DNA of 64,000 bases. It comes from Heteronotia binoei. Its lineage: Eukaryota. The notes beneath the pieces are model-generated. The model made no database searches and had not been told where the DNA came from. It saw only the letters and a program-made list of their open reading frames with translations. The translations under genes were made by a program, and so were the position numbers. This document shows, in pieces, positions 10,801 through 16,800 of this stretch; the first letter of the stretch is position 1; every line of letters starts with the position of its first letter. Location: assembly GCF_032191835.1 (NCBI RefSeq), contig NC_083237.1, positions 496,001-560,000 of the forward strand, in the 5' to 3' direction.

Positions 10801-13800
10801 TCACCACTACACCCAACTGGCTCTCTATTAGAGCTCTGGCTGACCCAAGGCCATTCCAGCAGGTGCAAGTGGAGGAGTGGGGAATCAAACCCGGTTCTCC
10901 CAGATGAGAGTCCACACACTTCACCACTACACCCAACTGGCTCTCTATTAGAGCTATGGCTGACCCAAGGCCATTCCAGCAGCTGCAAGTGGAGGAGGGG
11001 GGAATCAAACCCGGTTCTCCCAGATAAGAGAGCTCTGGCTGACCCAAGGCCATTCCAGCAGCTGCAAGTGGAGGAGTGGGGAATCAAACCCGGTTCTCCC
11101 AGATAAGAGAGCTCTGGCTGACCCAAGGCTATTCCAGCAGCTGCAAGTGGAGGAGTGGGGAATCAAACCCGGTTCTCCCAGATGAGAGTCCACACACTTA
11201 ACCACTACACCCAACTGGCTCTCTATTAGAGCTCTGGCTGACCCAAGGCCATTCCAGCAGCTGCAAGTGGAGGAGTGGGGAATCAAACCCGGTTCTCCCA
11301 GATGAGAGAGCTATGGCTGACCCAAGGCCATTCCAGCAGCTGCAAGTGGAGGAGTGGGGAATCAAACCCAGTTCTCCCAGATAAGAGAGCTCTGGCTGAC
11401 CCAAGGCTATTCCAGCAGCTGCAAGTGGAGGAGTGGGGAATCAAACCCGGTTCTCCCAGATGAGAGTCCACACACTTCACCACTACACCCAACTGGCTCT
11501 CTATTAGAGCTCTGGCTGACCCAAGGCCATTCCAGCAGGTGCAAGTGGAGGAGTGGGGAATCAAACCCGGTTCTCCCAGATAAGAGAGCTCTGGCTGACC
11601 CAAGGCCATTCCAGCAGCTGCAAGTGGAGGAGTGGGGAATCAAACCCGGTTCTCCCAGAGAAGAGAGCTATGGCTGACCCAAGGCCATTCCAGCAGGTGC
11701 AAGTGGAGGAGTGGGGAATCAAACCCGGTTCTCCCAGATGAGAGAGCTATGGCTGACCCAAGGCCATTCCAGCAGGTGCTAGTGGAGGAGTGGGGAATCA
11801 CACCCGGTTCTCCCAGATGAGAGAGCTATGGCTGACCCAAGGCCATTCCAGCAGCTGCAAGTGGAGGAGTGGGGAATCCAACCCGGTTCTCCCAGATAAG
11901 AGCTATGGCTGACCCAAGGCCATTCCAGCAGGTGCAAGTGGAGGAGTGGGGAATCAAACCCGGTTCTCCCAGATAAGAGAGTTCTGGCTGACCCAAGGCC
12001 ATGCCAGCAGGTGCAAGTGGAGGAGTGGGGAATCAAACCCAGTTCTCCCAGATAAGAGAGCTCTGGCTGACCCAAGGCCATGCCAGCAGGTGCAAGTGGA
12101 GGAGTGGGGAATCAAACCCGGTTCTCCCAGATAAGAGAGCTCTTGCTGACCCAAGGCCATTCCAGCAGGTGCAAGTGGAGGAGTGGGGAATCAAACCCGG
12201 TTCTCCCAGATGAGAGAGCTCTGGCTGACCCAAGGCCATTCCAGCAAGTACAAGTGGAGGAGTGGGGAGTCAAACCCGGTTCTCCCAGATAAGAGAGCTC
12301 TGGCTGACCCAAGGCCATTCCAGCAGCTGCAAGTGGAGGAGTGGGGAATCCAACCCGGTTCTCCCAGATAAGAGGGCTCTGGCTGACCCAAGGCTGTTCC
12401 AGCAGCTGCAAGTGGAGGAGTGGGGAATCAAACCCGGTTCTCCCAGATAAGAGTCCACACACTTAACCACTATGCCAAACTGGCACAAGGGACATACTGT
12501 GGGACCCAGGTGGTTTTCCCCCTTGGATTTGGAGCCCCTGCCATATTTCAGGCTGGAACATTCCTGGAGATTCTGGGGTTGGAACCAAGGAAGGACAGGG
12601 AGCGACAGCTCCAGGGAACAATGGCATAGAGTCCACCCTCCAAAGCAGATGTTTTTCTCTAGGGAAACTGGAGATTAGCTGAAATTCTGGGGGATCTCCA
12701 AGCCCCCCCTGGAGGTTGGCAAACCTATTTAAGTCTTCCTGTTGGAGGGGCCCCCTTTCAGCCCTGCTTGGTGGCCAGTCCCAGGAAGACAGCAGCCATG
12801 GGGGCAGGAGGGGGGCAGCTACCACTTGGAGGGCAGGCCAGCTGAAGAGCCCAGGACCTTCCTCACCTCTCCCCCTCCCCACAGGGACCCCACGGAGCCC
12901 TCAGAGAAGGGGCAGGCCTGGCCCCCCTACAGCGTGTCGGGACAGAAGTACGTCAAGCTGAACACGCAGCCGCTGGAGGTGGACCGGAGCCTCCGTGCCC
13001 AGATCTGTGCCTTCTGGAACCGCTTCCTTCCCAAACTGCTCAACGTGACAGGTGGGTTAAAGCCTTTGGAGGGGGCTGGGCAGTCAAATGCAAATCCAGC
13101 TCCTGCCCAGATGTGGCAGGCTGGCTCCAGCCAAAGGCCAACTTCACCTGACCCCCTCCACCCTTGGCCCCAGATGTTGCCCCGCATCAGTGTTCCCTCT
13201 AAGCTGAATTAGTGTGAGCTAGCTCACAGATGTTTAGCCTCCAGCTCACACCTTTTTGTCGTAGCTCAGGAAAAATGGCCCCAGAGCAAGCTAATTGATG
13301 CAGCAGCTCACAAAGTAGAATTTTTGCTCACAAGACTCGGCAGCTTAGAGGGACCATTTCTCCTCATCTGTCTGTTCCACTCCTCACAGGAAACAGCCCC
13401 CCCCCCCCCCCGTTCTCATCCCAGCCAGACCAACTTTCAACTTCCCCTGCAGGTGGCGCTGTTGTGCCCTCCCCCCCTCCACAGAAACATGACTGACCAT
13501 TCTATGACACCACAGCAATTCAGCCAATGAGGTTTCAGGATGCCGGCATTTGGGTCTGTTAAATAAACTTTAGATGGGCCCTTCCAGCCTGCCTCCCTTC
13601 CCCCCATATTTACGCCTTGTTTTCTTCTCCCTTGTAGAGCCTGCCATGCCCTGTGCTCACTCTGGCGGGGGCCCCGACCTGCCTCCCACCTTCCTTCTCC
13701 CCCTCCTCCTTCCGTGGTACCTTCTGTCTTGAGTTCCTGGAGGAGGGAAGCAAGGAGGAAGAAGCAACTGCGGGGGCTGGCAGGGCGGGGTCACCCCAGT

Positions 13801-16800
13801 TTCTGCCCCAGAGAGCCGGGGGGGGGGGGCATTGAGAGCAGCAGGAGGCAAAGACCCCCGGCCCTCCTCTGGGCAGGAAAGCAGGGAGATCAGGCTCAGT
13901 CCTGAGACACTCTCTTGGAGTCACATGGATCCAGCTACGAGGCAAGCCCACCCCCTTTGCCCCCCTGCGCTCTGCTAAGGCCTCCAGTCCAGCCGTTTCT
14001 ACGTTTGGGGACTCAGCAAACAGTCTGAACCGGTCGCAAAGCAGCTGGAAGAAAATGCAAGCCGGGAGTTTGTCTTCCAGAGTCGTTGGCCCGGGCGAGA
14101 AGGGAGAGCAGCCAGCCCCCCTCCTGCTCCCACTGCACAGCGAGGGGGGGAAGGGGTGCCGGGAGCAAAGGGATAGAGGGTGACTCGATGCACCTCCGCC
14201 TCTCACCTGCAGCCAGAGAATAAAGTCCCCGGTTGCTCAGTGTCAGATGATGCTCATTGGAACAAAAAATACCAACCTGGAGTATCTGCTAAGCAGGTCC
14301 TGAGAGGGGGAAAGAGGAGGGGTCTGGACAGCAGAGAGTCCCGTGGAAGGCTCAAGCAGGGTGCTGCACAGTAAAAAAAGAAAAAGGCAAATTCTCTTGG
14401 GGGTTCTCAGGAAACAGCCAATCTTATAACCCCCCCCCCTGTTTAGGTCTGTCGTTGGGCCCAGGGCTTTTCTAAGCAGGAACGCAGTTCCAGCTGGCTT
14501 GGAGTCAGGGGGTGTGGCCTAATATGCAAATGAGTCCCTGCCCTGGTTAGGCCTGATTCGGAGTCCTGTGTGCCGTTCTGGTCACCGTATCTCAAAAAAG
14601 GATACTGCAGAGCTAGGGAAAGTCCAGAGGATGGGAGAGATTGGAGAACCCTTCCTAGAAGGAAGGGCTGAAGAGAGATGCTTAAGGGGGGCACGAAAGA
14701 GGTGTGGAAAGACCTGAGTCAGATTGAGGTGATAAGAGAGGAAGTCCTACGACTGATACACAACTTCAAAATTGATAAGTCACCAGGCCTGGATGGCATA
14801 CATCCAAGAGATCCGAAAGAACACAAAGGTGAACTTGTGAATCTCCTGACAAAAATATGAAGTCTTTCATTGAAATCTGCCTCCGATTCTGAGGACTGGA
14901 AGGTAGCAAATGTCACCCCCGTCTTTAAAAAGGGTTGCAGAGGAGATCCGGGAAATTACAGGCCAGTCAGTCTGACGTCAATACCAGGAAAGCTTGTTAT
15001 TAAAGAGAGAATGAGTAGGCACATTGATGAACACAAGTTATTGAGGAAGACTCAGCATGGGTTCTGTAAGGGAAGATCTTGCCTCACTAACCTGTTAAGA
15101 GTTCTTTGAGGAGGTGAACAAACATGTGGACAAAGGAGACCCTATAGATGTTGTTTACCTTGACTTCCAGAAAGCTTTTGACCATCAAAGGCTCATAAGT
15201 AAACTCAAAGGTCATGGGGAAAAGGGCAAAATGTTGGACTGGATGGGCCACTGGCCTGATCCAACATGGTTTCTCTTCTGTTCTTCAGTTTATTCAATGA
15301 TGCGTGGGGCAGAGAAATCTTTCTCCCCCTTCCCAAATACTAGAACCGAAGGGCATCAGTGAAGTCCATGAGCAGCAGATTCAGGACAAATGGAAACACT
15401 ACATTACCCAGAGAGTGATTTCATTGTGGGATTCACTGCCAGAAGAAGTAGCACTGACCACAGGCAGAGATGGTTTCAAAAGGAGATTAGACAGATTAAT
15501 GGAGGAGGGATCTGTCAGTGGCCATGAGCCACGGTGACTAAAGGGAAGCTCCACATCCAGTGGCAGCAAAACACTGCATCCCAGAGCCAGGAGGCAACCT
15601 CAGGAGAAAGCCTCAGCCTCTCTGCCATGTTGCTGGCTGTCCAGAAGAACTGGATGGCCACTGTGTGAGACAGGAGGATGGACTGGATGGATCCTCACTG
15701 GTCTGACCCAGCAGGGCTCTTCTGATGCTCTTCTCAGGGGAAGGCCTCAACCTCTCTGCCCTGTTGTTGGCTGTCCAGAGGAACTGGTGGCCATTGTGTG
15801 AGACAGGAGGCTGGACTAGATAGACCCCCCCCTGGTCTGATCCAGCTGAGCTCTTCTGAGGTTCTTCTCAGGGGAAGGCCTCAGCCTCTCTGCCCTGTTG
15901 TGGGCCCTCCAGAGGAACTGGCTTGCCACTTTGTGAGACAGGAGGCTGGACTAGATGGACCCTCCCTGGTCTGACTCAGCAGGGCTCTTCTGAGGTTCTT
16001 CTCAGGGGAAGGCCTCAGCCTCTCTGCCCTGTTGTTGGCCCTCCAGAGGAACTGGTTGGCCCCTGTGTAAGATAGGAGGCTGGACTAGATGGACCCTCCC
16101 TGGTCTGACTCAGCAGGGCTCTTCTGAGGTTCTTCTCAGGGGAAGGCCTCAGCCTCTCTGCCCTGTTGTTGGCCCTCCAGAGGAACTGGTTGGCCCCTGT
16201 GTGAGATAGGAGGCTGGACTAGATGGACCCTCCCTGGTCTGTCCCAGCAGGGCTCTCCTGATGCTCTTCTCATGGGAAGGCCTTGGCCTCTCTGCCCTGT
16301 TGCTGGCCCTCCAGAGGGACTGAGTGGCTTCTGTGTGAGACAGGAGGCTGGACTAGATGGACTCTCCCTGGTCTGATCCAGCAGGGCTCTTCTGATGTCC
16401 TTCTCAGGGGAAGGTTTTGGCCTCTCTGCCCTGTTGCTGGCCCTCCAGAGGAACTGGTTGGCCTCTGTGTGAGACAGGAGGCTGGACTAGATGGACCTTC
16501 CCTGGTCTGATCCAGCAGGGCTTTCCTGCTGTTCTTATTTTGTTGTTTGTTTGTTTGGGGAAGGAGAAGTGTGTGCCATTTATAAAATGTCAGTGTGTGT
16601 TTCTTCCTTTCCTTTGTGCATGCCAAGAGGTGGGGGGGGGGATCCAGGCCCTCTGGGCAAGGTAGGTCAGGGGGCTTAGGGCTAGGAGGGCTGCTAGCCC
16701 ACACATGGTGCCAATGTGCCACCCCCTGCAGGGCACGTGTCTTCTGCTGTGCCTGGAAAGAAGTGCCCAACTCTGTCTCTGCCAGCTGGAGGGGGGTGTC

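Follow-up and report, generated by a model that had tools for sequence, protein, structure and literature searches.

Our analysis identified a candidate alternative terminal exon in the acetylcholinesterase gene (ACHE) of the gecko Heteronotia binoei. Its coding part lies at positions 13638–13732 of the window, the whole 64 000 nt stretch of DNA that was analysed, and is very likely an H-type terminal exon, predicted to yield GPI-anchored AChE. The H reading is supported: its position, donor, phase, cysteine, run of small residues and hydrophobic end are all as expected of such an exon. The H form would be an isoform missing from the annotation of this genome, and is not a new kind of element.

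The ACHE locus and the candidate H exon

The window contains the ACHE locus, as 515 of 515 residues are identical to residues 63–577 of the RefSeq H. binoei AChE (row P0126). The following features were defined.

7825–9369, + strand: main catalytic coding exon of ACHE, an open frame matching RefSeq AChE at 515/515 residues, with Pfam COesterase found on homologues
12885–13051, + strand: last common coding exon (equivalent to mammalian exon 4), its peptide and donor shared with six other lizard loci
13052–13637, + strand: exon 4-to-H intron (read-through region), moderately conserved outside the MITE in the seven-species alignment
13191–13356, strand undefined: MITE with 16 nt terminal inverted repeats, from the seven-species alignment and own-genome search
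13609–13637, + strand: H-exon acceptor, a TAG preceded by a pyrimidine tract, with TTTAC as candidate branch point (A at 13612)
13638–13732, + strand: H-exon coding part, 31 codons and a TGA stop, exon 4 supplying one base of the first codon from its end
13733–14245, + strand: putative 3′ UTR belonging to the H exon, with G-runs (e.g. 13817–13829) and AATAAA at 14219–14224
~17358–17479 (approximate coordinates, by arithmetic from the open frame), + strand: T-exon coding part, encoding the tetramerisation tail (last residues DRCAEL)

The main catalytic exon corresponds to mammalian exons 2 and 3, which form a single uninterrupted exon in this gecko. The last common coding exon ends in AAC GTG ACA G, with one base left over (phase 1) at the donor (CAG/GTGGGT). 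The preliminary description of this locus had placed an acceptor, consisting of a pyrimidine tract and TAG, after this exon and upstream of the T exon. We confirmed its presence: the tract occupies 13614–13634, TAG follows at 13635–13637, the H exon begins at 13638 and the intron is 586 bases in length. Splicing of 12885–13051 to the acceptor at 13637/13638 would generate an in-phase tail of 31 residues that terminates at the TGA stop (13730–13732). The composition first described for this peptide (one cysteine, SGGG, a proline spacer and a hydrophobic end of about 13 residues at the stop) was also borne out by the sequence, in which Cys-6 and SGGG (residues 9–12) are followed by the Pro-rich spacer PDLPPT and a 13-residue hydrophobic end that reaches the stop.

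The 261 bases around the H exon are single copy in the 2.6 Gb genome. No match was obtained with Rfam on 9370–17300, or with Pfam on three long open frames over the H exon on both strands. RNA run X1 contains 0.21 of the sampled words from 13600–14260, a share for which unspliced pre-mRNA could account. Downstream of the stop, a G-run is present in most of the aligned geckos. The AATAAA that had been assigned to the H exon as its own signal is present at 14219, but its position is not conserved in other geckos.

The MITE makes up ~166 of the 586 bases of the exon 4-to-H intron, and was inserted in this lineage only. Searching the gecko's own genome with the element gave 4078 first-look candidates, and all 40 of those scored were matches (one was the query itself; the other 39 showed 86–92 % identity).

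Conservation of the exon among lizards

The genomic alignment comprised seven lizards: this gecko, five other geckos and Zootoca. Loci of the other species were retrieved by way of their T isoforms. The donor, phase 1 and placement after the last common exon and ahead of the T exon form a layout that was repeated in the six other lizards and in a turtle. Conservation of acceptor and frame in related lizards, which had been proposed as a check, was found. The acceptor was near-invariant in all seven genomes, the 18 nt acceptor tract being identical in the six geckos and differing at 2 of 18 bases in Zootoca, and a TTTAC-like motif upstream of the tract was kept across the aligned lizards. Cys-6 was likewise invariant (7/7). 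The frame and stop were intact in five of the seven genomes, with the stop at the same place in those five; in G. japonicus a terminal frameshift changed the last residues, and in G. kuhli the stop was lost and the frame extends to 113 residues.

The GC- and CT-rich composition of this region, in which open frames are common, could in principle place a random reading frame after an equally random pyrimidine tract. We consider such an origin extremely improbable, given that orthologues of the block, with the frame kept, occur in seven lizards and a turtle. Moreover, a control scan of exon 4-to-T introns for an AG followed by a Cys-containing, hydrophobic-ended frame yielded few other candidates (0–2 per intron). 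The H exon stands above chance because its acceptor, cysteine and frame recur at the equivalent position in the genomes of six other lizards.

A second alternative is that the block is conserved as a non-coding element controlling how the T form is spliced or polyadenylated, for example as a decoy acceptor or within a long-range branch region, in which case the frame would be incidental. The moderate conservation of the exon 4-to-H intron and of the post-stop region is in keeping with an element of this kind, as is the corresponding mammalian region, where a cryptic poly(A) site and G-runs with a regulatory role are located (PMC5388418). However, in-frame indels were all multiples of three, with a single exception at the very end of the frame of G. 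japonicus, whereas the indels just past the H stop were not, and the Cys codon and stop position are kept. This pattern, together with the H-tailed models that RefSeq carries for a tortoise and at least eight lizards, makes a purely non-coding role very unlikely. Under the H-exon reading, and by analogy with human ACHE, whether H or T is selected is probably linked to polyadenylation within the H exon and to the post-stop G-runs.

At the peptide level, the shuffle z score of the gecko H tail was 12.4 against Paroedura, 7.3 against Zootoca and 9.0 against Elgaria. These homologous lizard tails (z of 7–12 within Squamata) support the H-exon architecture and position that had originally been recognized from the sequence of this gecko. 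H-type tails are already predicted in RefSeq/UniProt for several of the same genera, as follows.

Paroedura picta X2: XP_077170080.1 (row P0122)
Gekko japonicus X2: XP_015283390.1 (row P0128)
Zootoca vivipara X2: XP_034992048.2 (row P0138)
Podarcis: rows P0141 and P0145
Rhineura floridana X2: row P0148
Elgaria X2: row P0008
Pogona X1: row P0135
Tortoise Gopherus X2: row P0159

The predicted isoforms of the other lizards derive from the orthologous exon: the donor and phase are shared, the acceptor is near-identical, the cysteine is at residue 6 and the end is rich in leucine and proline, with many of the tails finishing in PW(Y/H)LLS like that of this gecko. On this sequence evidence, we conclude that the H exon is orthologous to the lizard H-type tails in the databases. 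Those isoforms are database models for other species, whereas the RefSeq record of H. binoei holds the T form only. RefSeq models of alternative isoforms normally need transcript alignments.

The preliminary description proposed that lizards have an H exon, and seven genomes support that proposal. It overrated the novelty of the exon, because H isoforms are already in the automatic annotation of at least eight lizards; the lizard H exon is thus not new to the databases. Our literature search found no paper reporting a reptile H exon or backing the lizard models. A protein search with the last 40 residues of Paroedura X2 returned nothing at E≤10, the query being short and simple for the size of the database, and in a search with the last 120 residues for short transcript-derived fragments across exon 4 and H, the only hits were a T fragment from salmon and one of unspliced read-through.

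The tail as a predicted GPI signal

We propose that the donor at 13051/13052 joins either the near acceptor at 13637/13638, giving the H form, or the far acceptor ~3.7 kb downstream, giving the T form. The H choice would swap the tetramerisation tail for the 31-residue peptide, in which Cys-6 may form a disulfide between two subunits. The C-terminal part would be recognized in the endoplasmic reticulum as a GPI-attachment signal, with SGGG as the likely omega region and the Pro-rich spacer and 13-residue hydrophobic end at the stop completing the signal. Removal of this part and its replacement by a glycolipid anchor would produce membrane-bound dimers like those on mammalian blood cells. We infer the use of the acceptor in this species, the cleavage, the GPI attachment and the tissue from sequence.

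Under rule-of-thumb GPI criteria, the tail has an SGG or GGG with 21–22 residues left, and its last 14 residues are uncharged; the omega-site filter is itself a rule of thumb and not a predictor, and the bat H tail escapes it. All nine of the squamate tails that were scored had the cysteine at residue 6, as did the remaining squamate tails listed; in turtles it was at residue 3. The hydrophobic end of the H tail is short and Pro-rich, with a best 11-residue Kyte–Doolittle mean of 1.9, compared with 2.9 in the bat H tail.

These values bear on the possibility that the exon is real and spliced but encodes a tail that does not function as a GPI signal in geckos. In that case, the disulfide-linked dimers would be secreted, would be retained and degraded, or would stay in the membrane through their uncleaved hydrophobic ends. 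The hydrophobic ends of gecko tails are indeed weak and contain two or three prolines; of the five gecko tails scored, four had a best 11-residue hydropathy of 1.7–2.0, and that of G. japonicus reached 2.8. The stop loss in G. kuhli and altered end in G. japonicus suggest relaxed constraint on the end in some geckos. The dN/dS comparison points the same way, in that pairwise values for the H exon were mostly 0.3–0.8; the check that had been suggested gave values below 1, which speaks for constraint on the exon, but only moderately so. Against this possibility, GPI signals tolerate loose sequences, and the cysteine, small residues, spacer and uncharged hydrophobic end have persisted across Squamata at its full depth, as well as in turtles. 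Furthermore, the tail matches the proven design of mammals and Torpedo (PMC3045457). We regard a tail without GPI function as unlikely, and favour the GPI-anchored form. On that reading, GPI-anchored AChE is predicted on cells of lizards and turtles, such as their blood cells, where it would bear on the use of cholinesterase biomarkers in reptile ecotoxicology.

Relation to the tails of other vertebrates

Mammalian exon 5a (H) gives rise to GPI-anchored AChE dimers on blood cells. It shares with the gecko exon its position in the gene, a cysteine, small residues, a spacer, a hydrophobic end and G-runs after the stop. The arrangement of the two exons differs, as H and T are contiguous within one exon 5 in mammals and lie ~3.7 kb apart in the gecko. 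H peptides are reported to have little sequence in common (PMC3045457), and similarity between our tails and the bat H peptide was weak and mostly not significant (z of 1.2 for the gecko and 4.0 for Pogona). For the mammal, frog and lungfish tails, peptide similarity is too weak to prove common descent; common descent of the gecko H exon with the mammalian exon is plausible. The H subunit of Torpedo AChE, which forms amphiphilic dimers (PMC2289553, PMC3045457), can be likened to the predicted gecko form in its design, as an alternative C-terminal peptide with a cysteine and GPI signal.

Among reptiles, a blind scan found an H exon in the turtle Emydura, which aligned to that of Paroedura with an E value of 4e-11. 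In a viper, only a relic of the acceptor tract remains, with its AG changed to CG, and the viper locus gave no S-type match. The alligator locus has no H reading frame. The alternative AChE tails of snakes in RefSeq are S-type only. The statement in the preliminary description that H exons were reported absent in birds and the snake Bungarus agrees with these observations and with PMC3045457.

Taking these distributions together, we lean slightly towards a single ancient H exon, at least as old as the lizard–turtle ancestor and possibly shared by all tetrapods, that was lost separately in snakes and archosaurs. In the textbook view, vertebrate AChE acquired GPI tails on several separate occasions and reptiles lack them; a single ancient exon, if true, would overturn both parts of this view. 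One orthologous H exon occurs in all major lizard groups sampled and in turtles, and this presence, with the viper relic and the absence from the alligator, makes a history of an old exon with several losses directly testable.

The S exon of Bungarus fasciatus (row P0201) is likewise an alternative squamate ACHE tail that takes the place of T. The Bungarus S tail is short, basic and hydrophilic, without a cysteine or hydrophobic end, and gives soluble monomers, unlike the predicted product of the gecko H tail. If the H exon is indeed single and ancient, snakes would retain a dead acceptor as its relic, and the S exon would have taken over the non-T role.

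A putative GPI-type alternative exon in the gecko ACHE gene

An acetylcholinesterase gene lies on the plus strand of the window. A preliminary description had proposed that the intron between the last common coding exon (exon 4) and the tetramerisation (T) exon contains an alternative GPI-anchor (H) exon, and every element on which this proposal was built, from exon 4 and the acceptor to the in-phase peptide, stop codon and AATAAA, was found in place, as listed below.

Features of the ACHE gene in the window
7825-9369, plus strand: single large coding exon, spanning mammalian exons 2 and 3
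12885-13051, plus strand: last common exon, with one spare base and then a CAG/GTGGGT donor
13609-13637, plus strand: H acceptor region, at the end of the 586 bases that follow exon 4, made up of a TTTAC candidate branch point with its A at 13612, then a pyrimidine tract and the TAG at 13635-13637
13638-13732, plus strand: coding part of the H exon, in the required phase encoding a 31-residue peptide followed by TGA (13730-13732)
14219-14224, plus strand: AATAAA

The coding sequence of the T tail lies approximately 3.7 kb beyond the H exon. The translated large exon is identical at 515/515 residues to the RefSeq Heteronotia binoei AChE protein (P0126, XP_060112432.1), and shows 88-90% identity to other geckos. 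P0126 carries the T tail, and its 90% cluster showed no second H. binoei isoform. The coding parts of mammalian exons 2 and 3 form one unbroken exon in the gecko and other squamate loci, and Logan-derived ORFs there also end ...ANFARTG.

The introns contain several further features. A ~166-nt MITE bounded by 16-nt terminal inverted repeats occupies 13191-13356, inside the exon 4-H intron, and is missing from the same spot in six other lizards; its family is abundant in the genome, with 4078 first-look candidates, and all 40 that were scored match (39 besides the query, at 86-92% identity). Two tandem arrays are located at 10314-12453 and 15599-16536, one with a period of 79 (27 copies, ~81% matches) and the other with a period of 134 (7 copies, 90% matches). 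Directly upstream of the H exon, intron positions 13419-13540 are well conserved with Gekko kuhli and include a CCAAT-box-like CAGCCAATGAGG at ~13520-13531.

Conservation of the H exon in lizards

Public records of other lizards include predicted AChE isoforms in which an H-type tail follows ...LLNVT, namely those of Paroedura picta (X2, P0122), Gekko japonicus (X2, P0128), Zootoca (X2, P0138), Podarcis lilfordi (P0141), P. muralis (P0145), Rhineura (X2, P0148), Elgaria (X2, P0008) and Pogona (X1, P0135). All of these listed lizard tails share a Cys at residue 6 and an uncharged, L/P-rich end, and many finish like the window peptide, in ...PW(Y/H)LLS. In shuffle tests, the window tail gave z = 12.4 against Paroedura, 7.3 against Zootoca and 9.0 against Elgaria.

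At the genomic level, the window was compared with the loci of Gekko kuhli, G. japonicus, Paroedura, Sphaerodactylus, Eublepharis and Zootoca. A homologous H block lies 300-500 bases past exon 4 in each of the six fetched loci. The preliminary description had named conservation of acceptor and frame in related lizards as a check on its proposal, and both are largely conserved. The six geckos share an identical 18-nt acceptor tract ending in TTGTAG, from which Zootoca departs at 2 of 18 bases. Upstream of the tract a TTTAC-like branch motif is retained, and indels within the reading frame in the seven-species alignment are of 3, 6, 9 or 12 bases. The stop position is common to five of the seven species, and both exceptions belong to the genus Gekko: in G. 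japonicus (L004 4956-5070) a 13-base gap alters the last approximately six residues, with a new stop shortly beyond, and in G. kuhli (L001 6849-7190) the stop TGA has become TGG and the frame extends to 113 residues. The disturbed tail end in this genus could be due to relaxed constraint or to assembly error. Pairwise dN/dS of the H exon is mostly 0.3-0.8, indicating weak to moderate constraint, as expected where a physico-chemical pattern rather than the exact sequence defines the signal.

In the 2.6-Gb genome the H block occurs only once. Rfam searches found no family in 9370-17300, and Pfam searches found no domain in the long open frames over the H exon on either strand. Three lines of evidence therefore support the H exon as real: H-type tails in other lizard records, genomic conservation of acceptor and frame, and a single-copy block without competing annotation. 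At least eight lizards and a tortoise already have H-tailed models from automatic annotation; the window exon is thus an unannotated example of a known exon type.

Predicted product, H/T choice and RNA signal

Torpedo and mammalian AChE-H (PMC3045457; see also PMC2289553) offer a model for a tail that combines dimerization with a GPI anchor. By analogy, joining exon 4 to the H exon would most probably replace the tetramerisation tail with a two-function peptide, in which the Cys would form disulfide-linked dimers and the C-terminal 21-22 residues would give way to a GPI anchor attached at one of the small residues of SGGG. Consistent with simple GPI rules, there are small residues at omega (the putative attachment site), omega+1 and omega+2, a Pro-rich spacer of 6-7 residues, and only uncharged residues among the final 14. 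The tail ends in a short, weakly hydrophobic stretch, whose best mean hydropathy over 11 residues (Kyte-Doolittle) is 1.9, compared with 2.9 for a bat tail. Taken together, the sequence suggests that the gecko H tail may be GPI-attached.

According to PMC5388418, the choice between H and T in human ACHE depends on hnRNP H-bound G-runs and on a poly(A) site of low strength within the H exon. The gecko H exon likewise has G-runs shortly past the stop, and most aligned geckos have a G-run there. The AATAAA at 14219 has no conserved position, and in other geckos one occurs ~880-975 bases past the acceptor; regulation like that of human ACHE is thus only an analogy.

RNA libraries from one study were scored by the share of sampled words that each contained. 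For sequencing run X1 the share was 0.12 over 12885-14240 and 0.21 over 13600-14260, so part of the H stretch is present in X1 RNA; run X2 contained 0.09 and none, respectively. Such word shares fit spliced mRNA and pre-mRNA alike.

The H exon outside lizards

The intron of the turtle Emydura macquarii was scanned blind for any AG that has an in-phase, Cys-containing and hydrophobic-ended frame behind it. One candidate stood out as strong (L008 3451-3549), 308 bases past exon 4 and after a 20-nt pyrimidine tract. It aligns with the H region of Paroedura at 73% across 114 bases (E 4e-11 within the intron) and matches the tail of P0159, RefSeq isoform X2 of the tortoise Gopherus. P0024, the AChE protein on record for Emydura, has the T tail, and the H-type exon is not represented in it.

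In the viper Vipera latastei (L007 ~9071-9114), 44 bases of the H acceptor tract survive at the same place (82% to Zootoca, E 1e-8), with TTGTAG changed to TTGTCG and no H-like frame behind the mutated acceptor. The only snake alternative tails listed in RefSeq are of the short basic S type, as known from Bungarus. In Alligator just 924 bases separate exon 4 from the T exon, with no H frame among them, and the bird and crocodilian AChE proteins listed are T-type or truncated. Frogs, one lungfish and one bat also have predicted H-like tails, with weak similarity to lizard tails (z mostly <3; Pogona-bat 4.0).

PMC3045457 cites the view that GPI signals arose more than once, on several separate occasions. 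On the basis of these comparisons, one origin of the H exon is well supported within Squamata and reasonably supported for Squamata plus turtles, and is possible for tetrapods as a whole. No later account of an H exon in reptiles turned up in our literature search. The wider pattern, in which lizards and turtles have the exon, a viper retains a relic and the alligator has none, represents a modest, testable correction to the literature.
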